From positions 124,001-188,000 of the forward strand of contig NIVC01001978.1 in NCBI GenBank assembly GCA_002269645.1: DNA of 64,000 bases. Reading direction: 5' to 3'. The notes under the pieces are model-generated. The model saw only the letters and a list, made by a program, of their open reading frames with translations, had not been told where the DNA came from and did no database searches. Made by a program: the position numbers and the translations under genes. Every line of letters begins with the position of its first letter. Within the stretch, counting starts at the first letter, position 1. The DNA comes from Macrostomum lignano (taxonomy: Eukaryota). Positions 1 to 64,000 of this stretch are shown here, in pieces.

Positions 1-2579
1 GCGCCTTCTCTGGAGCAAGGGGCAAGTCTGATGTCTTGTCGTGCAACTCTGGGGGTAATGGAGATCAACCTTTAGCAGGTATCCAACATCGCCCTCTGGG
101 TCAAACTCATCCCTGATCCATCTCTCAACCTCATTGTTTGGTGGTACAGTGTCAAGCATTGGAACCCACACCATGGCAGTTTGGTGGACAAGGCGTGTCC
201 GTAGAGGTTGTTGGCGTCGATGGGGATAAGATAGGTTTGAGGTTGATGCGAATCATACAGCTCACCGAGTCCGGGATGGTTGGCTTTGGCTCTGTGTGTG
301 TTGACAAATGTCATACCACCACGAGTACCCTCTTCAAATAAGCTGTACAACTCTGGACATTGCAGCAATTCAAGCTCCAATTTACAGTACTTAAGCGCTG
401 CTTCGAAAGACATTCCCGGCGTCGTTATAAAATGCACTGGGTCTAGCCCATCCGAAGTGAGGCTCATTCGACGAAACGCCTCGAACACATCGGCGAGCTG
501 GCGAATGTCCATTTCTAGGTATGCAAGCATGTAGTCGCGCAGTGTCTTACATCCAAACTCTCTCCAGGCACGCTGGGCAGTTGCATAGTCCTGATCATTG
601 CAAGGCTCATTGTTCAAGTCGTTAGCAAAAGCTTCTTGGGATGGGAGCTGTTGCTCATCTAAATTCGAATCACTAGTTACATAGGAATAGGGGAACACCC
701 CCTTTCGCAGTAGGACTTCGGTGGAGGCGAGTGGATATCGCTGCTGCATCTCCATCGTGTAGTGACAGTCTACCGGGGTTAGATTGCGCACTAATTGAGC
801 AAGACTCGACGCCATGAATTGGAAAGAGTCGAGAAAACGCAGACGCATGAATTTTGGCACCAAGCGATCTTTAGATGAGTCATAGACCGACTCAATAGGT
901 ATACGGGCCTCTAGAGTCATGTAACGCTCCTTTGTTTGTGCAATGACACTTAGTTCCCAATGTTTCATACGACCGATCACCGTGCTGCACAACAAGTGTG
1001 AATCATAACCTCGGAAATTGTGAAAAAAGATTGGAAGAAAGTCGCGCTTGAGAACAGCTGACTCATTACACGACGGGCATGCAGCACCCAAAAACTTGCC
1101 ATTGAGATGATCATGATGAAAGTGGCGATCGTCATCAAGAACTTTCTCGCACAAGCAGCAATGAGTGGCAGTCTGGAACTGCTCTTCCTCCTGGACAGAG
1201 CGATTGGCAGGGTAATGACTATGTCGCGCATTCCACTTGTATGCTGCAATGGCGACAGCCTCCAGTACCTGTAGGAAGTGCATCATGCACTCATCCGACT
1301 TTGAAAACAGCTGCATAGGACGTTCGGAGAGTGGAGGCCCAGCTACGTCACTTCTTTGGACAATAAGGAATCCGGCAGCGGCTGGAAGGTGGTGTGCAGT
1401 CTTAAAGGTAACACAGCCATCTAGCTCATCGTCTATGGGGGACATCATTGCTTCAAAATCTGCATAGATGACATGAGGTGGGGAGAGTGTTTTGTGCCAT
1501 GCCTTGAATCGTAGTGTTTTATCCTTTGGCATCACCTCCTCCATGCTATCCTTACGGCCAATGCACCGCCGTCTATGAACGGATAGAGACTCAACCGTCC
1601 GGAACTTGCCTAGACAGCGATCGCACCAACGATATCTATGCGCGTCATGACTGTTCATTAGACGATCTAGGTTAGCAATAGCACACCAATGGTTGCCGGC
1701 ATCAGTGGTAACCAATAGAAGCAGGATCAATCGATGAGGTCGCCATTCGTGAATGAGATCTGCTGGGGCTGGGCGTAAGCACTGGGCATGGCCGTTAGTC
1801 CAGTTGAAGGCCGAGATAGCCAATCCTGGATTGTTCTTTTCCACTCGACCCAGGTCATTCACGTTGGCAGGGAAAGGAACGTTGTCCCAACGGAGTTCGT
1901 CTTCCCACTCCCGGAAAGTGAAGCGTCGCAAAGGCTTCTCACTGCTGACACGGTCTGCGTGCAATGCAGACAGAACGGCATATTTCAGACAGTCGTTCCC
2001 ACTGGAGTAGGCATTGATCACTGCCTTTTTAGCCTTTAGCTTTGGTGGAAGTTCAAATGGGTTGGAACTTATACCTGAGCCATGAGGCAACTGATATCTT
2101 ACAATGGAAAGATCTACGCAGCGAGTGGAGTCAATTGTCCACCCACTGCCATTGCGAAGGTATTTGCTCAGTCGTTCCAAAATAAGTGGGATTTCCCGAA
2201 CAAAGAAATCTTCTTCCTCATCTGAAAGGACTTCGGCCGTTTCACTGGCAAACCAGGCTGTGCTCTGCGCCACAAAGCTGCCACCAGCCCAACGCTGCAT
2301 AGACACGCCGAGTCGGATTTGGACCTTGATAGCAAAGCCTGGTTTCGAACGCAGATCTGCCAGGAGTTCTGTGCCTGAAGCAATGGATGACTCCAGGGCG
2401 TCGATGGGATCGCCGGCAACGATCCGCCGATAGAGTCGCGTCTGGCCGAAAAATGCTTCTTTAATTAATTGGAATTGACATGGTTCATCAGAAAATAAAG
2501 TTGGAATAATTGGGCACACTGAGTAGTGAGCTAATATGTCACCGGGCACTGTCTGACTACAGTATTCACAAAATGTCAT
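1..2579 (-). CDS. Protein-primed family B DNA polymerase (Polinton/Maverick PolB), frameshifted near its 3' end and running off the window
   Basis: The 835-aa ORF 72-2579 has exonuclease motif YADFEA, RFLDSFQFMASSLAQLV, LLRKGVFPYSY, GLDPVHFITTPGMSF, RGGMTFV and polymerase motif A IDANNLYG. It also has an internal CxxC..HxH..CxxCN (endonuclease VII-like) insert and a C2HC-like finger. Homology continues past the ORF stop in shifted frames (EFDPEGDVGYLLKVDLHYP, then ELHDKTSDLPLAPEK). No introns. Confidence 0.92.
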
Positions 2580-48500: not shown

Positions 48501-51034
48501 TAAAGACACCGAATCCCACAGCTGACACTCCCTGACTCAACAGGATGTAAAGACACCGAATCCCACAGCTGACACTCCCTGACTCAACAGGATGTAAAGA
48601 CACCGAATCCCACAGCTGACACTCCCTGACTCAACAGGATGTAAAGACACCGAATCCCACAGCTGACACTCCCTGACTCAACAGGATGTAAAGACACCGA
48701 GTCCCACAGCTGACACTCCCTGACTCAACAGGATGTAAAGACACCGAATCCCACAGCTGACACTCCCTGACTCAACAGGATGTAAAGACACCGAATCCCA
48801 CAGCTGACACTCCCTGACTCAACAGGATGTAAAGACACCGAATCCCACAGCTGACACTCCCTGACTCAACAGGATGTAGAGACACCGAATCCCACAGCTG
48901 ACACTCCCTGACTCAACAGGATGTAAAGACACCGAATCCCACAGCTGACACTCCCTGACTCAACAGGATGTAGAGACACCGAATCCCACAGCTGACACTC
49001 CCTGACTCAACATGATGTAAAGACACCGAATCCCACAGCTGACACTCCCTGACTCAACAGGATGTAGAGACACCGAATCCCACAGCTGACACTCCCTGAC
49101 TCAACAGGATGTAGAGACACCGAATCCCACAGCTGACACTCCCTGACTCAACAGGATGTAAAGACACCGAATCCCACAGCTGACACTCCCTGACTCAACA
49201 GGATGTAAAGACACCGAATCCCACAGCTGACACTCCCTGACTCAACAGGATGTAAAGACACCGAATCCCACAGCTGACACTCCCTGACTCAACAGGATGT
49301 AAAGACGCCGAATCCCAAAGCAGACACTCCATGACTCAACAGGATGTAAAGACGCCGAATCCCAAAGCAGACACTCCATGACTCAACAGGATGTAAAGAC
49401 GCCGAATCCCACAGCTGACACTCCCTGACTCAACAGGATGTAAAGACGCCGAATCCCACAGCTGACAATTTTGTTGCGTCCTACTACTTCAATTGACCTG
49501 TTGACCATACTTGAATCAAACCTTCAAATCAACCCGATTCGCTTCGAATTCTCAGCGCCAACGACGAATACTCCGACTACATGAACACTAACGCTATAGT
49601 GGAGAAGAACGGCAAAATAATGTGGACTTTTCCCATGGTTGTAAAAATGTACTGCACCCTGGACGTGCGCTATTTCCCATTCGACTCGCAGGACTGTAAC
49701 GTGACGTTCGTGTCGTGGACATACGACGGATTCCAGGTGGCGCTTAACCACACCGGCCGAGACGACCAGAAAGTGTACTACAATGCCAGAAACCAAGAAT
49801 GGAAAGTGACAGGAATTTCGCCGCGCCAAGAGCTGATCAAGTATCCCTGCTGCAAGTCGCCGTTCCCAGTTATTCACTTCACGATACACATGTACAGGCG
49901 GTGTCTTTTCTACGTTATCAACCTTATTTGTCCCTGTCTGCTGATCTACTTTGTCTCATTTCTGGGCTTCTACCTGCCAATAGAATCTGGCGAGAAGGTT
50001 AACCTTGAAATAACTGTACTGTTGGCTCTGGTGGTCTTCCTGCTAATGGTGAGCGAGACTATGCCGCCGACACCTGATGCCATTCCTATTCTTGGTTAGT
50101 AATGCTCCTCGGTTTCATTGGTTTCAAGATTAGAATCAAGGACTTCTAGACTAACAGGACGTAAAACTCAAAGATATTGAATCCAATTACGAAAAGCATT
50201 CCTACGAGCTAACAGGCTACTTAAGAATGATAGGATAGCAAGGATAGTTATGTTTACTACCTGAATACTACCTTAAAAATGAAACTAATCTCTTCCAAAC
50301 CTCGATAAACTGGCCGAACTTTCAGGCCTGCTATTCACTGTCACAATGACAATGGTAGCCCTTGCAGTTGTCATGTCGGTGATTGTAACGCGAGTGTTCT
50401 TTGCCGACCAGCATCACCAGCATCAGCAGGAGGAGCATCAGCAGGGTCTGCACCAACGAAGGCATCGACTGCCGAGTTACATTGTGTGGCTCGCCAAACT
50501 GCATCGTCGCTGGACTGGCTCCTCGCTAGGGAAGTCAAAGAATGCGACAACAGCGACGGGCGCGGCTGCTTCGGAGTCGCGCTGCTCGTTGGGCCAGCAG
50601 CATGAGCAGGCCACTAGACGCCGCTGGGCCGAAGCGACCGACAGTTCGAATTCGCCGTTGAAATCGCCAGTGCAGCAGCCTCCGACATTGCCATCAACGT
50701 ACTTTAAGGTAGTTCAGAGAAGCTCCTTATGATAGTTAATTAGGGAGCCATTCTCAGTTCTACCGCTATTCTCACTTATTAATATGTACTCAAGGTCGCT
50801 CTACAGCCAATCCCAGCATCATCTAATGGCACAAGCGATGGAACTCGGCTACAGCAAAAGCAGAAGCAACAGGAGCAGCAGCAGCAAGAGTTGCAGGAAT
50901 TATCCGACGTGTGGAAGCACGCGGCGTTCGCTCTGGATAGGATATTTTTCTGGGTGTTCACAGCGCTCACAGTGGCCATGTTCTTCACCATCTGCTGTGT
51001 GGCATCGCCCGCTTTCAATGAGGATCACTCTTGA
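45561..51034 (+). CDS. Nicotinic acetylcholine receptor alpha-type subunit (Cys-loop ligand-gated cation channel); signal-peptide exon not located
   Basis: Exons 45561-45733, 46488-46532, 46646-46752, 49556-50094, 50326-50708, 50807 (or 50795)-51034, GT-AG and phase-compatible. Has Cys-loop CTLDVRYFPFDSQDC, loop B WTYDG, vicinal YPCC, IWRPDL, M1-M3 (PCLLI..LGFYLP.ESGEKV...VLLAL.VF.LMVSE.MP) and M4 preceded by W...A..LDRIFFW. Confidence 0.95.
45820..46140. repeat. 21-bp intronic minisatellite
   Basis: Unit GTGTCTAACAGGTGTGAGGTT, about 15 copies. Confidence 0.94.
46865..49467. repeat. 47-bp intronic minisatellite (2.6 kb, highly homogeneous)
   Basis: Unit CCGAATCCCACAGCTGACACTCCCTGACTCAACAGGATGTAAAGACA, about 55 copies. 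Confidence 0.97.
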
Positions 51035-52570: not shown

Positions 52571-52670
52571 AAATTATCAGTTTCGTTAACAAACCAATCA
52601 ACAACATCAACTAGATTACTTTACCCATCAGTTAGGCCAACAAGGCAGCCGATCTCCACGATCTCCGCTC

Positions 52671-52981
52671 TCAGTCGGCCTGCTCAGAGGTAGCCGGCGT
52701 TGGCGGCGTCGGCGGCTGCAGCAGCTCGTCCATCACGTCGTAGACGTCCACCTGCTGATGCTCGCCGCCAGCAGTCGTGCCGAAGCCGCCACGGCGCAGC
52801 ATCCGGACGAGAATCAGCGCCGATTGCGCCGGTGGCAGCAGCCGTTCGCGCAGGTCCTGCCACATCGCCCGGGACTCCGGGTCTGCGGACTCTCTGAGCT
52901 GCGCCTGCATGTCCGTGTCCAGGGGGCCCGGCCCGTAGCTTAGCAGGCTCAGGTCCGGCCTGCGGCGGGTGAACGGCGGTA

Positions 52982-53056
<75 letters not shown>

Positions 53057-53094
53057 GCCTGTCTGTCTTAGTGTTTATCTGTCTGTCTGTCCTG

Positions 53095-53173
<79 letters not shown>

Positions 53174-53176
53174 CTG

Positions 53177-53236
<60 letters not shown>

Positions 53237-54596
53237 GCCTACCTGCCTGCCTTTCAACCTACCGATTCATAAGTCTCTTTACTATCAGTATTCTAACTAA
53301 CTATTTTACTGATCGACGATCCAGTCTATCCCACTTTTCTCTTCAATCTACTCGACTCTCCCCAATTTACTCCACTCTACTCCATTCTCCCCCACTCTAC
53401 CCCACTCTCCCTCAATCTACCCACTCTCCCCCAATCTATCCCACTCTCCCCCAATCTACTCCACTCTCCCCCAATCTATCCCACTCTCCCCCAATCTACT
53501 CCACTCTCCCCCAATCTACTCCACTCTACTCCACTCTCCCCCACTCTACCCTACTCTCTTCTAATCTACCCACTCTCCCCCACCCCAATCTATCCCACTC
53601 TCCCCCAATCTACTCCACTCTCTCCCAATCTATCCCACTCTCCCCTAATCTACTTCACTCTCCCCACTCTGCTCGACTCTCCCCCAATCTAGCCCAGAAT
53701 AACAATCTCAGGTCTCACCTCTCGGCAGCCAGAGTGCGAAACAGCATGAGCCTGGCAGCTTTGCTAGCGCAATAGACAGCCATAGATTTGAAGGGTTGCA
53801 CAGCGCACAGCGAACTAACATTGACTATCCACCATTGATTCACAATTGACAGCTTAAGACAGTAGGCGTTTAACAGCAGTACAGAAGTGATATTCACACT
53901 CCAATGCTCGTCCAATACCGCTTTATCAGTCAGGCAGTCGGATTTCTGGCCATAGATTCCCAGAGTGCCGGCATTGTGCACCAGCAGGCCAAATGGGGGT
54001 GCGTCTAGAAGTTTTGAACAAAAGTACATGAGGTACTTACTATGTACTTTATATAGCCGCTCAATTGTGCTATTTCCGAAGCTTGTTCCAGTTAAAGATT
54101 TCACCATTATGGCACTGAATAAGACTGAGGCCATGGAAGATGTGATCTCCCCTTTGTGCATCATGGGGTCACTAGAGAATGACCCCCTCTTGGTACATCA
54201 TGGGGTCACTGAATATTGACTCAATTAGTTCGTTTCGGGAAAAAGAAGTAATTGAAAAGAAAAATCCAATCAATGAAACTTACAAGTTCCCAACAGTGGA
54301 CTCTTAGTGGCTTCTTGCAGAGCAGACTCTATTGCATCAGCATTAGCCTGGCCTAAATCCAAACTTACAGTTCGAGTTTCAATTTCATCAGAGGCGTTGC
54401 GCAGTTCAGCAATAGCAGCAGCAACCAAGTCCAAGGCTTCGCTATTTCGGCCAATCAGGATGAAACGAGATCCTGGAGCGGCATCCTCTGCTAGGGCCAG
54501 GGTTAGGGTGCGGCCGAAGCCGCGACCTGCACCAGTGATAATGTATAAACCTGGTTGGCTGGTCATTGGCAGTGGCTGTGGCTTGATCTGAGCCAT
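52671..54596 (-). CDS. SPR: Sepiapterin reductase (SDR family), 3 exons
   Basis: Exons 54596-54284, 54004-53719, 52959-52671, GT-AG and phase-compatible. Motifs are IITGAGRGFG, LVHNAGTLG, VNVSSLCAVQPF, catalytic YCASK, LSYGPGPLDTDMQ and C-terminal VDVYD. Confidence 0.93.
52982..53690. repeat. (GTCT)n microsatellite plus CTCTCCCCCAATCTACTCCA-type repeat in SPR intron 2
   Basis: GTCT run at 52982-53250 and ~20-bp C-rich units at 53330-53690. Confidence 0.92.
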
Positions 54597-56676
54597 GTTT
54601 TAAAGATTATTTAGCATGCAAAATGAAGGGTGTAAATTGTGTTATCTAAATTATCTAAAATATTTTCTAACAAATAGAGACATATGGAAATAAAAACATA
54701 CATATTTGGCATATGGATAAAAAAATAAATTGAAATTTAGAATATTATTAATGAGACTGAAATTTTTCAGATTTTCACATTGAGTATTATACTTTCTTTT
54801 ATTTCACAAATAATTTATTCATTTATATATTTATAATTCATTTATATTTCATTTTATTATTGCATTTTATTACATATATATATTACATTTACATTTATAT
54901 ATTACATTTATATTACATTTTATATATTACATTTATAATTCATTTATATAAATTACTATTTGACAAAAATAAAGCATTAACTTAAAATGGAGAATTGTTA
55001 GTAATAAATACATTCATATATTACGACTAATCCGACGTGACAGTCTAGTTTAATAATATATGGGAAAAATTATTTCGAAAAGGACAAGTATGTTCTCTTT
55101 TAGTAAATTTGAAAGCATTTTAACTTTTGGGTTTTAAACTGAAGTGTTATTATCCTAATTTGTTTAGTTTAGCAATATTTTACAGGTTAGGTATATTCAT
55201 AAAATATCAATAACAAAATTAACAAAAAATAGAAAATAGTAGCTAAGGCATACATGTAAGGTATGTTAGTGGACGACTGGTATGTGGTATGATTTTTTAA
55301 TTATAAGCGTAGACGAAGTAAAGTCACTTTTAGTAGACGAAGCAGTACGAAAAAATAGTTCATTTGCTTCAACCACCAAATAACATATATAACAGTAATT
55401 CGTAAAAAACAATTTCAAATCATAGAATATAAAATTTTGTTGGTATTAACAGCAGCAGAGTCAACAATAATTAGCCTGCTTTTGCCCACTTTCGAAGAAA
55501 AACATCAGATTAGAATTATTTTCCAAATCATTATCATAAAAACGGTTTTGTGATTTCATACAGCAATCAATTTACAGATATTTAATTTGTCTCCTTACTG
55601 CATTTAAGGTCTATTCTTTTGTTATTAAAATAATTTTTAAAACCAACTTTGTTATATCGGTAAGCTAATCCGGCAGTGTTTAAAAATCACTGATGAGAAT
55701 GAAAGATAAGTCTATTCAATGACCACTGCATATAGCTGTATGTAGTTTTACAACGGTCCTTGAGTATATTCTCACATGCATAAAATACTATTGCTATCCA
55801 TGAACGTTTTGGGTACTTAAGAGTTGAAAATTGTTTAACGGCCGTGGCGGTATACTAGCTACTCGCCACGGCCTTGTGTCCACTTGGTGTATTGCTTTGT
55901 TTTTTTAAGTTAATGTTTAAAAAATTAGATAAGAAAAAACCATATTATTCACATCCATCTCTTTGCCTCTTCACTATATATTCCAGTTTTTTTATGAATC
56001 AAGTGAAAATTATCACCAGACTGCAGAAGACTGCAATAGAGGGCAATAAAAGCTCGACTTTCTTATGCATATACGAACGCGAATCTATACACCACCTCGA
56101 CCATAAATTTATGCTCATGTATACATGTAGTTATATTGATGAGGACGCACTTTTTTCCAAATTTCACGCTCGCACGGGTTCCAAACTTGCTAGCCTACTA
56201 ACAGCAGGCTATGGGCGTTTTTCTCCCTCTTTTGTAATTTTTCTAGAATTCATACTAGTAGGACTTCTGTAGCTATATTAATCTGCCAGCAAATCTGCCA
56301 GGTCTGACAGCAACCTGCGCCTCACTCAGTGCGGAGGCTGCATGGCGCTAGATAGTCTGAAAGGATGCGGGCGGTACGCAGCTTTTTTCTCATCATTTTG
56401 ACAGGCCATCAAGATTTATGAGGTCAGGGCCTATTGTTCGTGTTCACTCAAGCGTGTGACAGCTTTGACAGCTATGCGTTTTACCCCTAAAAGTACGTTG
56501 GGATTGGCGATTAGCGATTTCTCTTCATTATCTTCGCTTTCTACTTAATAAGAGCTTTCTAATGTATATTTTTTCATTGATTTTTGTCACTTCTACGCGA
56601 AAAGGCATAAATCATTTTGTTGCGATTTTGATTGATTTATGGCCGCACCTGTCATATTTTTACGACCCCGAGGGAA

Positions 56677-57686: not shown

Positions 57687-58406
57687 TCTCGCCACTGCAA
57701 GAATCCCCTGCACAAGTCCCCTCTGTACCTGCATGGCCAATGCGATCGAGTCCCAGCAGTGTCCCTTAACATCGGCTATGACTTCGAGATTGACAGCAAA
57801 AAGAAACGTGTAGTTGGCAGGTAAGTGCAAAGCCCCTTCTAGTCGGAAGCCCGATTTCGAGAGTCCTGGTGAGCCAGGACGTACGGGCTGGTGGCAGCGA
57901 GTTAGCTAATCTGCGGATTAACTAATTTCTACCTTCAAAATTCTCCCTGCTTGTCTCTCGCTGTCCCTCTCTTAGCTATAGGACCTAGACTGCTCGCCAC
58001 ACGATCAAGCTACCATGTGGCTGACCATCTGACAGGAGTGGGGGACCAGGACTCTAATTGATTTATTTCTGAGACCTGAGGCCCGAAGGCTTCCCCACGA
58101 GGGGGCTGAAAGGCCGAAACCCATCAATATCCCCAATTTTTTTCTAAAAATTGTTAAAAATTTAGATTTCGGAAGGGTAAGGAGTTTGAAACAATGCACC
58201 AAAAACAGATACATCCGTTCAAAAACCCGCCACCAGCTGTACCAGACGGTAGGAGGCTTCCAGACGCTGACGTCAATCAGAAGATCGCGGCAAGTGTGGC
58301 GGGCTACGCGCAGAAAAAGGTTAAGAAAAAAGCAAAACGGAAGTTTATGAAAAAGGGGGCTAAATTCACTGGAAAGGTTGTAACGGATATTCTTGACTTT
58401 GATTAA
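57687..58406 (+). CDS. Candidate small basic protein (Lys-rich C-terminus, PFK.PPP motif); 5' end unresolved
   Basis: ORF 58194-58406 (70 aa) is open back to an acceptor at 58165. A strong donor CAG|GTAAGT at 57820/57821 splices in frame (exon 57687-57820). No start or signal exon is established. Confidence 0.4.
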
Positions 58407-60020: not shown

Positions 60021-61923
60021 AACATGGTAACATTAAAGTGAATCTTAGAGCCATGCATATTCTACGAATAGGAATCTAGGCAAATCTGCGTGCTTTCAAA
60101 GGAGCCACAAAAACATACAAACTTTACAACTTAAAAGTCCATCCGATTGAGACAGAAAATGGCAATGAAAATAATAAGCAATCAGAGTTCACCCCCAAAT
60201 GAAGTCAGAAATGTCGAAAAAACTGAGTGACCATATCGTGCTCCCACTTTGGTAGCAGAGTAACACTTAGGTCAAAATAAAGAAACTGGTGCAGAGAAAT
60301 CGTCACTGCTTGCGGTTCCATTTTGGAGGCTTAAGTTCACATCCTCTTTCGACCATAGTAAGGACGCTGCTAAAATGATTTTTCGGCAATGTGAAGTTTC
60401 GGCCAAGTGAAAGCGCCCCGCGCGGACGATATAACACCGCTTGGGTCCTCGATGGCGAATTGCTAGCTCGTACGCCTAGCAAGTAATCAACAAGCGCGCC
60501 CCACAGGTTGAGGATAGTGATGAACACGTCCCGGCCGCTGACGTAGTTGCGCAACCACCTTGACGTACTCACGTAGCAGCCGTGCCAGAAGCAAGTCCCC
60601 GACTCCCCACTTATAGCTTTCCTGATTCCTGAAGGCACTTCCTGAAGTACTGTCAGTTAAAGACTTAATTCCCTGTGTATTATATCAGCCCCCTGCCCTT
60701 TGACGAGTTCTTATTAGTGCCCTTTGAAACATCTCAAATTTTATTTCCAAAGACTTGTTATCGAAGGGGCATGTTGTAGACTACGATCTGCTCTATAACT
60801 TCGATGGCACAGTTTGTTACAGCTGTTACAGCTCGTTGGGGCTTTCATGTTAAACTTTAAGCCTCTCTTAACTCAGCGACTACTCAAACATCATGTTAGG
60901 TCAAGTACTCAAACTCCGTCAAGTTTTTTTTTGATTAAAATAGAATGCATGCTGGGCAATGTCATGCCACGATCAAATTCACATTTCCTAAATTTCAGCT
61001 CTCTGAGTTAGCCGTTACAACAACAGTAGAACCTTTAATAACAATGTATTTGAATTTGTACTCGGAAAAGTTTACAACGTTAACAAACGTATCCAATCGC
61101 TTTAAGTTATTTTTAATTAAAAAATTTACTTTATTTGTACAAAGAAAAGTTGCACAACAACAGTATAGTTTCAGCAAGTGTTTCTACATTAGGAAGGTAT
61201 ACTATAAAAGGTACTGAATTCTGATAAACAAAGTGAATGACGGTTAAACTCTAGTGAACTACAAGCTAACATAAACTATTTTTATGATAAAATACTTGGG
61301 CCGCTTAGACACTTGTGTTTAGTAAAATACAATTAGGTTCAGTCATAATGTTCATTGTAAGCCAAGGCAACTGAAATGTACATTGACGTGTACATTAAAA
61401 TGTACATGTACATAAAAATTAGACCTGGGCCTAAGGGTTTAGCTACGGATGGCCTGCAAGGGATGGGACAGAGAAGCAATAAATGAGCCTTTAAGGAATG
61501 CAATTACAATGCTTTTACTTGTATTTCAACTTCTACTGAACTGAAAGTAGCTTGTATGCTATAATGCGCTGAGTGAATTCACCATCTAGTTGTTACAGTT
61601 TGAAACTTGTATAGTTTTTATAGGCAAGCAGAGCAGATTCTGCTTTTATATCCTACGTACATGTCTCATACCTAAAAATCATAAAAGATTCATGTTTAAA
61701 GCTCGACTCATTGGTTTTATAAATCTATTTTCTCATTCTGTTACACTTTATTGCTACACACTCAGCTATAAGAGTTTTAATTTTCTAACTTTTCTAAGAA
61801 TCTAAATTTTCCAAGAAACGTTTAGTTTCGGACGCTTCTATACCTGAGTAGTCCCCTCATTATACAGATTTCCCAAGTTCAGAAACAAGATTCCATCTCT
61901 TCTTACCGCTACTGCATCCTTCG

Positions 61924-61938
61924 GTTGCTATGGGCAAC
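61924..61938. promoter_or_regulatory. Candidate RFX X-box
   Basis: GTTGCT-ATG-GGCAAC, a near-palindrome matching the X-box consensus, about 390 bp upstream of the ATG at 62327. Confidence 0.4.
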
Positions 61939-62326
61939 GAAATAAGATTTGTAATCACAACCAGTAGACACAGGAATGCCAAGCATTTACTCAAGTAAGA
62001 CATTTTGCTGGCTGCGACAAAATAAAATTAATAATGACCAACGAAATCTGGCATGCGACTACATGTAGGGTTTAGGTAATTCCGACTCTCAGTTGGCGTC
62101 TAGGCCATAGACATCTGCGTAAAGTACATGTAAGTCAACTTGAAGAAATATTGCACTTTCGCCAGATCTTAGTCAATTATTTGACTTTATATCTTTGCAA
62201 TCGTCCATGGCCAAAATAAACCTAATAAACATAAGCTTTGAGCTAATTTCTAATTCGAGTAGATGATTGCTACCTCTACATCATTTTAGTAAGAGTAAAA
62301 AAAGCATAAAAATATTAATTTCGAAA

Positions 62327-62740
62327 ATGTCGAGCAGTCAACTTTTCACCAGTCTGTGCTTGCTGGTAACGGCTCTGATGTTAGCTAATGAAGTTCAAGG
62401 ATGCCCTAGGCCTATTTTAAGAAGAGGTAAATATCCTAATTTGTGTTCTAGTTGACATGGGCTCTACGTACGATGTAGGAATAATAGGACAGATAGACAC
62501 GGCGGAATAGAGCAGTTCGTCACATCGGAGCCTCTCCTTTCTTCCGCAGTGAAGAACATAAGAAATCCGTTTAAATCGCCGCCACCTCCTCCAAGAAAGA
62601 AGCTGGACATCAGCTGGCCCGTGAACCGGCCTGTCAAGTCAAAAATGGCCTCAATGAAGTCCATCAATAAGGATTTGAAGAAAATGAAAAAAGCACGGGA
62701 AGCGGCTTATTTTAAAAGAAAGCAGGCCGGCAAGCTATGA
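62327..62740 (+). CDS. Small secreted cationic Pro/Lys-rich peptide, 96 aa, 2 exons
   Basis: Exon 1 (62327-62426) encodes a signal-peptide-like MSSSQLFTSLCLLVTALMLANEVQG/CPRPILRR. The intron 62427-62549 (GTAAAT...CCTCTCCTTTCTTCCGCAG) is phase 1 and joins in frame to exon 2 (62550-62740). AATAAA at 62941. Confidence 0.75.
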
Positions 62741-63319
62741 AGCGAAAAAGTTTACTGCATTGGACAACAAGCTCATGTGGTGTCAAAGAGCTCTACTTTT
62801 TACTGATCATCGTTTTTGATCAGTCAATGTGAGTTCTTTATTGACTACTAGCACGCTGTTTATTTTTTTGAAGGAGTACGAGTATAGCTTTTTTGTACAT
62901 TTTTTTCAGTCACCCTTTTTAACGAGAGTAGCGAAACTTTAATAAATAAAATTGCAAGTTGCAAATAGCTTTTTGCCATAATGAAGCATGTATCCATCTA
63001 CGAGTTGCATGTACTCGTACTGAATGCCTAACATGTACAATATTGTCTGCAACGCTCTAGTCGTGTACTCTATAGCTTGTATACAAGCGTAAAGTAATGC
63101 ATCCAACAAATATTCGAAAACGCGTTTTGACATTGATTTTAGCGAAAGAGCTCAAAGTAATAGTGATGCAGTAGTGTAAACATCACTCATAAATTGTAGG
63201 TATCGTAAGGTTTAATTTGAATACGTATTTGCCCCTGTGTTCTTCGATCTTGGTCGTGCCGGGATTCTTCGAACTGGGACCTAGGTGCGCTGTCGTCCAC
63301 TCTGCTGGACATGGATGGG

Positions 63320-64000
63320 GGTCCACCCCAACTGCCAGCCGGAAAACTGCCAGCCGACAACTGCCAGCCGACAACTGCCAGCCGACAATTGCCAGCCGAG
63401 AAAACTGCCAGCCGGAAAACTGCCAGCCGACAACTGCCAGTCGACAATTGCCAGTCGACAATTGCCAGCCGAGAAAACTGCCAGCCGGAAAACTGCCAGC
63501 CGACAACTGCCAGTCGACAACTGCCAGCGGACAAGTTCTAGATAATTGAATCTACTGTAGCCTACTTATTAGCTAAGTAAAAAGCACAAAACTGTTTGGC
63601 TAGCAAAAGGCTTGTGGGGTAGCCTTAAATGTCGCCCTTCTCTTCCCTAAATTTTTCAGATTTCCATTAGAAGTATATATGTGAAGGAGAAGGCATTTTG
63701 TAATGCCTATTGTAAATATTTCTGTATTGAAAGTTTATATTTACTTTATTATTTAATTTGCGATTGCGATTGCTATATGACGCAATCCTAGATAAGTATA
63801 TTAAATTACTTTACTTAAATAAAGCTTTCAAAGAAAGAACAAAGGCTACCTAAAATACAAAATTTGAATGCTTTCTCCTTCAACTGTTGTCGGCTGGCAG
63901 ATTTCTCGGCTGGCAGTTGTCGGCTGGCAGTTTTCCGGCTGGCAGTTTTCTCGGCTGGCAATTGTCGACTGGCAGTTGTCGGCTGGCAGTTTTCCGGCTG
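63320..64000. mobile_element. Foldback/MITE-like element with inverted arrays of 15-16-bp subrepeats (right end beyond the window)
   Basis: The left arm 63330-63530 is (AACTGCCAGCCG(A/G)(C/A)A)n. The right arm 63884-64000 is its reverse complement (GTTGTCGGCTGGCAG)n. An AT-rich ~350-bp spacer separates them. Confidence 0.8.

Follow-up and report, generated by a model that had tools for sequence, protein, structure and literature searches.

A 64,000-nucleotide (nt) stretch of the genome of Macrostomum lignano, a free-living marine flatworm, was analysed (contig NIVC01001978.1, positions 124,001 to 188,000; hereafter the window, on whose scale coordinates are given unless another locus is named). 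It carries Mlig009388, a gene for a small basic protein and the first member (A) of a tandem family. The start ATG lies at 62327, and R33 is the last complete codon of the exon 1 coding part (62327-62426, +), which ends in phase 1. This part agrees fully with the annotated coding sequence (CDS) and shows 84% ungapped identity to paralogue B. A phase-1 GT..AG intron of 123 nt (62427-62549, +), starting GTAAAT and ending CCGCAG, separates it from the coding part of exon 2 (62550-62740, +), in which the TGA stop occupies 62738-62740. The joined exons give a 291-nt CDS and a 96-amino-acid (aa) protein. The 3′ untranslated region (UTR; 62741-62965, +), which runs to a putative 3′ end, contains an AATAAA poly(A) signal at 62941-62946, and this signal and its surroundings are conserved in paralogue B.

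The product is identical (100%, full length) to GenBank PAA62065.1 and PAA62673.1 (hypothetical protein BOX15_Mlig009388g1/g2, UniProt A0A267EKJ8), and the GenBank gene span of 414 nt equals the span 62327-62740. The initial annotation, made from the letters of the window, had proposed the two-exon structure, the 123-nt phase-1 intron and the 96-aa product, and all three match the annotated protein exactly. Its concern that the open reading frames (ORFs) might be a fragment of a larger gene falls away, the annotated CDS being exactly 96 aa, and its description of the gene as unrecognised did not hold, as the gene has been annotated since 2017 as BOX15_Mlig009388. Three sources fed the Mlig_3_7 annotation, namely RNA-seq (StringTie/TACO), a de novo transcriptome and transcript ends defined by experiment, and novel models with fewer than 0.5 reads per kilobase per million mapped reads (RPKM <0.5) and without de novo transcript overlap were dropped (PMC5730564). 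Because that annotation was built from RNA-seq, the 62426/62550 junction, which the initial annotation had put forward, has transcript-level support, given here by the annotation and not by inspection of individual reads. Furthermore, the identical GenBank/UniProt protein, the matching gene span, the 100% identity of the last 11.7 kb of the window to contig NIVC01001978.1 of assembly GCA_002269645.1 and three paralogue types with the same exon boundary and GGTAAATAT donor argue against a chance ORF. We are therefore highly confident that Mlig009388 is a genuine, transcribed two-exon gene of M. lignano. It has been public as an unnamed hypothetical protein, and the family itself is uncharacterised.

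The relatives of Mlig009388 are all from M. lignano and all unnamed: BOX15_Mlig020625g1 (PAA84953.1), BOX15_Mlig027967g1/g2 (PAA62066.1/PAA62672.1) and BOX15_Mlig033008g1 (PAA84952.1). Mlig020625 has 96 aa and 74% identity to Mlig009388; Mlig027967 has 100 aa; Mlig033008, a 94-aa variant of Mlig027967, has an in-frame stop at its own locus. Identity of the paralogues to member A is 55-74%, with E-values of 1e-38 and 2e-21 in the sequence search and 7e-54 and 3e-42 in the profile search, and Mlig009388, Mlig020625 and Mlig027967 combine full-length similarity with a shared gene structure. A tblastn search over the three loci that carry the family (L001-L003) gave the tandem order A, B, C. From the stop codon of A it is about 3.6 kb downstream to exon 1 of B (at about 66.3 kb on the window scale, about 2.3 kb past the window end), and C lies about 6 kb further downstream. 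All three types have the same junction of exons 1 and 2 and the same GGTAAATAT donor; their introns measure 123 nt (A), 796 nt (B) and about 1250 nt (C). B and C, rather than an ORF at 58 kb that the initial annotation had named, are the real cluster partners of the gene. That ORF (58194-58406, +, 70 aa, Lys-rich) shares only the 8-residue motif HPFKNPPP with Mlig009388. It lacks a signal peptide, no annotated or homologous protein corresponds to it, and at the sister locus L001 an insertion of about 920 nt interrupts it.

The duplicated unit is the gene alone, extending from a 5′ flank of about 90 nt through the exons and the 3′ UTR to about 110 nt past the AATAAA (about 63059). In the three-copy alignment, the 5′ flank shared with B and C (62237-62326, +) marks the start of this unit, with A-versus-B similarity beginning about 90 nt before the ATG and weakly similar sequence still further upstream; ungapped identity between A and B over positions -100 to -1 is 74%. 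Within this flank lie TTTTAG (62284-62289), which is a conserved acceptor-like site of the form TAG|T, a block rich in A/T at 62305-62314 and the start context CGAAAATG, features that may point to a promoter or a trans-splice acceptor. The flanks of L001-L003 are 95-97% identical to one another, and the CDS of A is identical at two of the loci. Large duplicated genome blocks are carried by the DV1 line of M. lignano (PMC5730564), and the three loci are read as such blocks. At L003 (6299-6710 and 17660-17860) copy A is frameshifted and copy C has an in-frame stop (…KQVPA-stop-ELV…); these defects represent either decaying copies or assembly/long-read indel errors.

The GenBank model of Mlig027967 (L001 13848-14979 and L002 13958-15044; about 66.3-67.4 kb on the window scale) deserves separate mention. 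It starts at exon 1 of paralogue B and takes a C-type exon 2 beyond the examined locus, leaving an intact B-type exon 2 unannotated. This mixed B/C model reflects either real exon skipping across the tandem copies or a multi-mapping assembly artefact.

Outside relatives were sought with the family as query. A HMMER family profile run against 1.84 billion representative proteins matched family members only, a Pfam search gave nothing credible, and a profile search of the Protein Data Bank (PDB) gave no matches. The family appears to be restricted to M. lignano within these databases, in which other Macrostomum species are probably not represented. Drosophila sex peptide was tried as a relative on the likeness of its WPWNRKP to WPVNRP and rejected: BLASTP returned an E-value of 0.43 with the motif not aligned.

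The N-terminus of the protein has the properties of a signal peptide. Its 12-residue Kyte-Doolittle maximum is 2.5-2.7, compared with at most 0.23 elsewhere, and all paralogues satisfy the same heuristics, in agreement with the initial annotation. VQG|CPR is the only site past the hydrophobic core that obeys the (-3,-1) rule and is common to all paralogues. The predicted 25-residue signal peptide MSSSQLFTSLCLLVTALMLANEVQG (62327-62401, +) is supported by its hydrophobic core, the shared VQG|C site and an AlphaFold helix over residues 3-23, and cleavage at G25|C26 with secretion of a 71-aa mature part is predicted. Recomputation gave for this mature part the composition already noted in the initial annotation: 23 Lys+Arg, 3 acidic residues, 10 Pro and 1 Cys, with a net charge of +20. 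The basic residues divide into 15 Lys and 8 Arg, and Pro makes up 14%. A secretory signal is lacking in protamine-like and sperm nuclear basic proteins, and the conserved signal-peptide-like N-terminal segment of all paralogues sets the family apart from this class.

The fold of the 96-aa protein was modelled with AlphaFold2 from an alignment of three sequences, with a mean predicted local distance difference test score (pLDDT) of 71. Besides the signal helix, the model contains a helix at residues 69-95 (pLDDT about 90), and residues 24-68 are without regular structure (pLDDT 56-70). Exon 2 (62550-62740, +) encodes the rest of a Pro-rich core (VKNIRNPFKSPPPPPRKKLDISWPVNRP), a variable linker and the Lys-rich helix. 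The initial annotation had described the C-terminal helix as probably amphipathic. The helix itself is predicted, but its amphipathicity did not stand: the maximum 18-residue Eisenberg hydrophobic moment (muH) is 0.41 in A and 0.34 in B; shuffling the same residues gave 0.39 ± 0.10, with 38% (A) and 67% (B) of the shuffles reaching the observed value. On the same scale magainin 2, melittin, cecropin A and LL-37 reach 0.51-0.89. Moreover, the helix is very hydrophilic, with very low mean hydrophobicity. The C-terminal helix is confidently predicted, yet it is not amphipathic beyond chance.

These values bear on the reading that the protein is a classical host-defence peptide, in which a Pro-rich half of the apidaecin/Bac7 type would be joined to a membrane-active amphipathic helix. 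In its favour, the protein is small, cationic and predicted to be secreted, has a predicted C-terminal helix and belongs to a set of tandem paralogues; like cecropin, magainin and LL-37, it also carries a predicted signal peptide and, as amidated peptides do, has Gly at the C-terminus or close to it. However, its helix is non-amphipathic, with muH in A and B not above shuffles and below the benchmarks, and much less hydrophobic than theirs, its charge density is much higher, and there is no sequence similarity. The Pro-rich half fares no better. The protein shares an N-terminal PRP motif, a run of PPPPP and many basic residues with apidaecin, drosocin, Bac7 and PR-39, but Pro-rich antimicrobial peptides are about a quarter or more Pro and Arg-rich, with repeated PRP or PxP motifs in a short mature peptide, whereas Mlig009388 has 14% Pro, a single PRP with no repeated PRP/PxP, more Lys than Arg and a mature part of 71 aa. 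Both antimicrobial architectures named in the initial annotation fail, because muH is no higher than in shuffles and Pro makes up only 14%; and no family match was obtained in Pfam, the PDB or the 1.84 billion proteins. The classical reading is regarded as very unlikely. The initial annotation had read the sequence correctly and over-read the function.

Comparison of the paralogues divides the protein into parts that evolve differently. The three types are alike in the signal peptide, the Cys past the cleavage site, the phase-1 intron, the strong positive charge and the tandem layout. Their invariant alignment blocks comprise most of the signal peptide, C26-P-R-P-I, N-P-F-K-S, P-P, K-K and the nine-residue D-I-S-W-P-V-N-R-P, so that CPRPI, NPFKS.PP and KK.DISWPVNRP combine into a conserved Pro-rich core of the pattern CPRPI...NPFKS.PP..KK.DISWPVNRP. 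Unlike these blocks, the C-terminal half of A has diverged in B and is replaced, with indels, in C. The ratio of non-synonymous to synonymous substitution rates (dN/dS) was estimated on these short sequences by the Nei-Gojobori method. For the signal peptide (codons 1-25) it was 0.32-0.71 over the pairs A-B, A-C and B-C. For the core (codons 26-61) it was 0.51 for A-B, 0.32 for A-C and 0.04 for B-C, the last from 1 non-synonymous versus 5 synonymous changes. For the C-terminal half (codons 62-96) the A-B value was about 3, with 16.5 non-synonymous versus 1.5 synonymous differences (18 substitutions). The contrast between a slow core and a fast C-terminal half is suggestive. Despite the divergence of that half, the net charge is +20 in A, +16 in B and +13 in the intact C. 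As the sequence changes there and the charge stays high, this points to selection on composition in the C-terminal half and on sequence in the core.

Coding constraint is supported independently of these ratios. The CDSs of A and B do not differ in length and their proteins align gap-free, while the surrounding non-coding DNA (5′ flank, intron ends and 3′ UTR) has 14-40 gap columns per 100-200 nt. This maintenance of frame and length amid indels, together with a core dN/dS of 0.04-0.51 (including the single non-synonymous change against five synonymous ones in B-C) and a signal peptide conserved at a dN/dS of 0.43, speaks against the view that Mlig009388 arose recently in this lineage and does little or nothing. 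On that view the gene would be transcribed and spliced, yet it would drift and owe its persistence to recent duplication alone. It would account for a dN/dS of about 1 over the whole mature part, for substitution-level identity in the 3′ UTR as high as in the CDS, for the disabled copies at L003 and for the lack of relatives beyond M. lignano in the databases searched. On balance this view is considered improbable.

Tandem duplication with one fast-diverging half is a pattern common in secreted effector families, and it counts in favour of the secreted polycation preferred below. A host-defence or effector precursor with the evolutionary logic of cathelicidins was also weighed, in which a conserved signal peptide and core would carry a diversifying, hyper-cationic, non-amphipathic helix that binds polyanions and is possibly released and amidated. 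The likeness to cathelicidin and amphibian-peptide precursors is one of evolutionary logic only, namely a conserved signal and N-terminal part followed by a fast-diverging cationic C-terminal part. In contrast to those precursors, Mlig009388 has neither a cathelin domain nor an acidic propiece, its N-terminal part is itself basic, its processing site is putative and the divergence rests on 18 substitutions. We consider this alternative rather unlikely. If it were true, the family would add a novel class of secreted effectors to a regeneration model in which transgenesis and RNA interference (RNAi) are available.

Processing also enters the possibility of a precursor of the peptide-hormone or neuropeptide type, in which convertases would cut at basic sites to release an (L/M)DISWPVNRP peptide and/or a C-terminally amidated helix. 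KK or KKK is conserved directly ahead of the invariant DISWPVNRP, a signal peptide is predicted, and the ends of B (...QAGRR) and the intact C (...AAAQG) resemble amidation signals. A ends in GKL, however, which is no canonical amidation signal. The dibasic site after CPRPILRR (RR at 32-33) is AK in both B and C, no basic site is conserved past the core, the basic residues are spread as composition and not placed as discrete sites, and the profile search yielded no relative in other flatworm proteomes. Such a precursor is considered improbable. The C-terminal Gly and the conserved KK before DISWPVNRP may be taken as leads for processing and amidation, and are evidence of neither.

A reproductive role was considered as well, with the protein a seminal-fluid (prostate) or female-gland (cement, shell, antrum) product that would be passed on or deposited at mating or egg laying and bind sperm, egg or partner surfaces. 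A small, secreted, orphan, tandemly duplicated and fast-evolving product would suit this role, and M. lignano has dozens of such prostate-limited transcripts: 76 are described, with a signal peptide in 38 of the 65 that have a translatable ORF (PMC5977470). The family resembles the seminal fluid proteins Mlig-pro1-76 (Weber et al. 2018, PMC5977470) in coming from the same species and in belonging to a small, secreted, mostly unannotated class. Searches of the literature for the gene ID "Mlig009388" or for peptide strings of the family found nothing, and the three family gene IDs did not occur in the supplements of M. lignano papers, of which genome-wide tables were covered in part and later work uses the v3 transcriptome. 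This version has more than twice as many units as the earlier one, and its IDs are probably renumbered. Searches for a single-cell atlas or for antimicrobial-peptide literature on Macrostomum likewise gave nothing relevant.

As a test independent of gene IDs, 448 unique primers for in situ hybridization (ISH), from parts 1-4 of the 5 parts of Table S11 (PMC7336406), were compared on both strands with the window and L001-L003. None of these 448 matched the window or the paralogue loci, the best agreement being 18 of 23 bases. The probes listed in the four parts are those for antrum, gonad, ovary and prostate, among them most if not all of the named Mlig-pro set, together with prostate-plus-other and some testis probes. 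In contrast to Mlig-pro1-76, neither Mlig009388 nor its paralogues are targeted by a primer of these parts, and the family does not appear there as a member of the published prostate-limited set, which bears on set membership and not on expression itself. Because the Mlig-pro ISH screen was limited to tail-specific, socially plastic candidates (PMC5977470), this negative lowers the seminal-fluid reading without excluding it, and a reproductive secretion as a whole is judged rather unlikely.

A structural or matrix polycation was given a similarly low probability. Here the protein would be a small Lys/Pro-rich part of a mucus, rhabdite, eggshell or adhesive secretion that cross-links or coats polyanionic glycoproteins and is anchored by its N-terminal Cys. 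One conserved unpaired Cys indeed lies just past the predicted cleavage site in all paralogues, the sequence is Lys/Pro-rich and mostly non-regular, and the helix contains basic clusters of the XBBXBX/XBBBXX type (KKMKKA, FKRKQA), a type linked to glycosaminoglycan binding. On the other hand, there are no repeats, the C-terminal half is highly divergent, and chemistry of the 3,4-dihydroxyphenylalanine (DOPA) type is unlikely because there is only one Tyr. The known adhesive proteins of M. lignano, moreover, are reportedly large, as Wunderer and colleagues are said to have described in 2019.

Against this background, the best overall explanation is that Mlig009388 encodes a secreted polycation from a lineage-restricted tandem family that binds polyanions, a reading we prefer tentatively and with less than even confidence. 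The 96-aa precursor would enter the secretory pathway and lose its 25-residue signal peptide at G25|C26, and the released protein of about 71 aa would begin with a single free Cys. Mature parts would then consist of the conserved non-regular, Pro-rich basic core followed by a fast-diverging, strongly basic C-terminal α-helix ending in ...KRKQAG(KL/RR). Outside the cell, the protein may act as a polycation that electrostatically binds polyanionic targets, with microbial envelopes, sulfated mucus or matrix glycans and nucleic acids as candidates. The conserved core may allow a specific interaction or, through Cys26, anchorage by a disulfide. The protein apparently does not work by inserting an amphipathic helix into membranes in the classical manner. 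The most likely setting, itself only a possibility, is secretion by a gland, where the protein would have a host-defence-type function or coat surfaces; the classical lytic model makes up a small part of that estimate.

Several points weigh against this secreted polycation. Secretion was rated somewhat below the reality of the gene because its basis is heuristic. Known membrane-active antimicrobial peptides do not typically combine a charge of +20 over 71 residues with a helix that is non-amphipathic. The difference in dN/dS between the core and the C-terminal half is not robustly significant (Fisher p 0.03-0.21 by rounding, binomial p 0.10-0.26), and a value near 1 over the mature part would equally be expected under relaxed constraint. 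Moreover, the family tolerates loss, as two of its L003 copies are disabled, unless these are assembly errors. Finally, an expression site of the Mlig009388 family was sought in the literature and among published in situ probes, and none was found.

Whether its role is immune, reproductive or in the matrix, this would be the first defined family of small secreted polycations for a tractable regenerating flatworm, and it would illustrate, within one small tandem array, how a conserved core can be coupled to a tail that evolves fast. For specialists in lineage-specific secreted proteins it holds nothing surprising. Its present value lies in a correct, already public gene model and in a shortlist candidate for ISH and RNAi screens.

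Other features of the window were recorded alongside the gene. Head-to-head with Mlig009388, 324 nt from its ATG, lies an ORF at 61860-62003 (-) that encodes MSYLSKCLAFLCLLVVITNLISLPIATEG|CSS, a signal-peptide-like sequence with a Cys past the likely cleavage site. It ends in a phase-1 GTAAGA donor, has the same layout as exon 1 of Mlig009388 and recurs in conserved form at the sister loci; neither an annotated or homologous protein nor a second exon was identified for it. Directly 3′ of Mlig009388, two arrays of a 14-nt unit (CAACTGCCAGCCGA) occur in inverted orientation at 63329-63534 and 63886-64000. Their 92-nt arms are 96% complementary and about 380-560 nt apart, the second arm runs past the window end, and more copies are present at the sister loci. 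The arrays look like a foldback element or one resembling a miniature inverted-repeat transposable element (MITE).

Further from the gene, an 835-aa ORF at 72-2579 (-) matches DNA_pol_B_2 (organellar/viral type B polymerase, E = 3.5e-7) and probably belongs to a mobile element of the Polinton/Maverick type or a similar one. An ORF at 49581-50099 (+) is an exon of a Cys-loop ligand-gated ion channel (Neur_chan_LBD, E = 2e-24; Neur_chan_memb, E = 3e-17) and covers the end of the ligand-binding domain and the start of the transmembrane region. In addition, a short-chain dehydrogenase/reductase gene (adh_short) lies at about 52670-54600 (-), about 8 kb upstream of Mlig009388, and is annotated at both sister loci.

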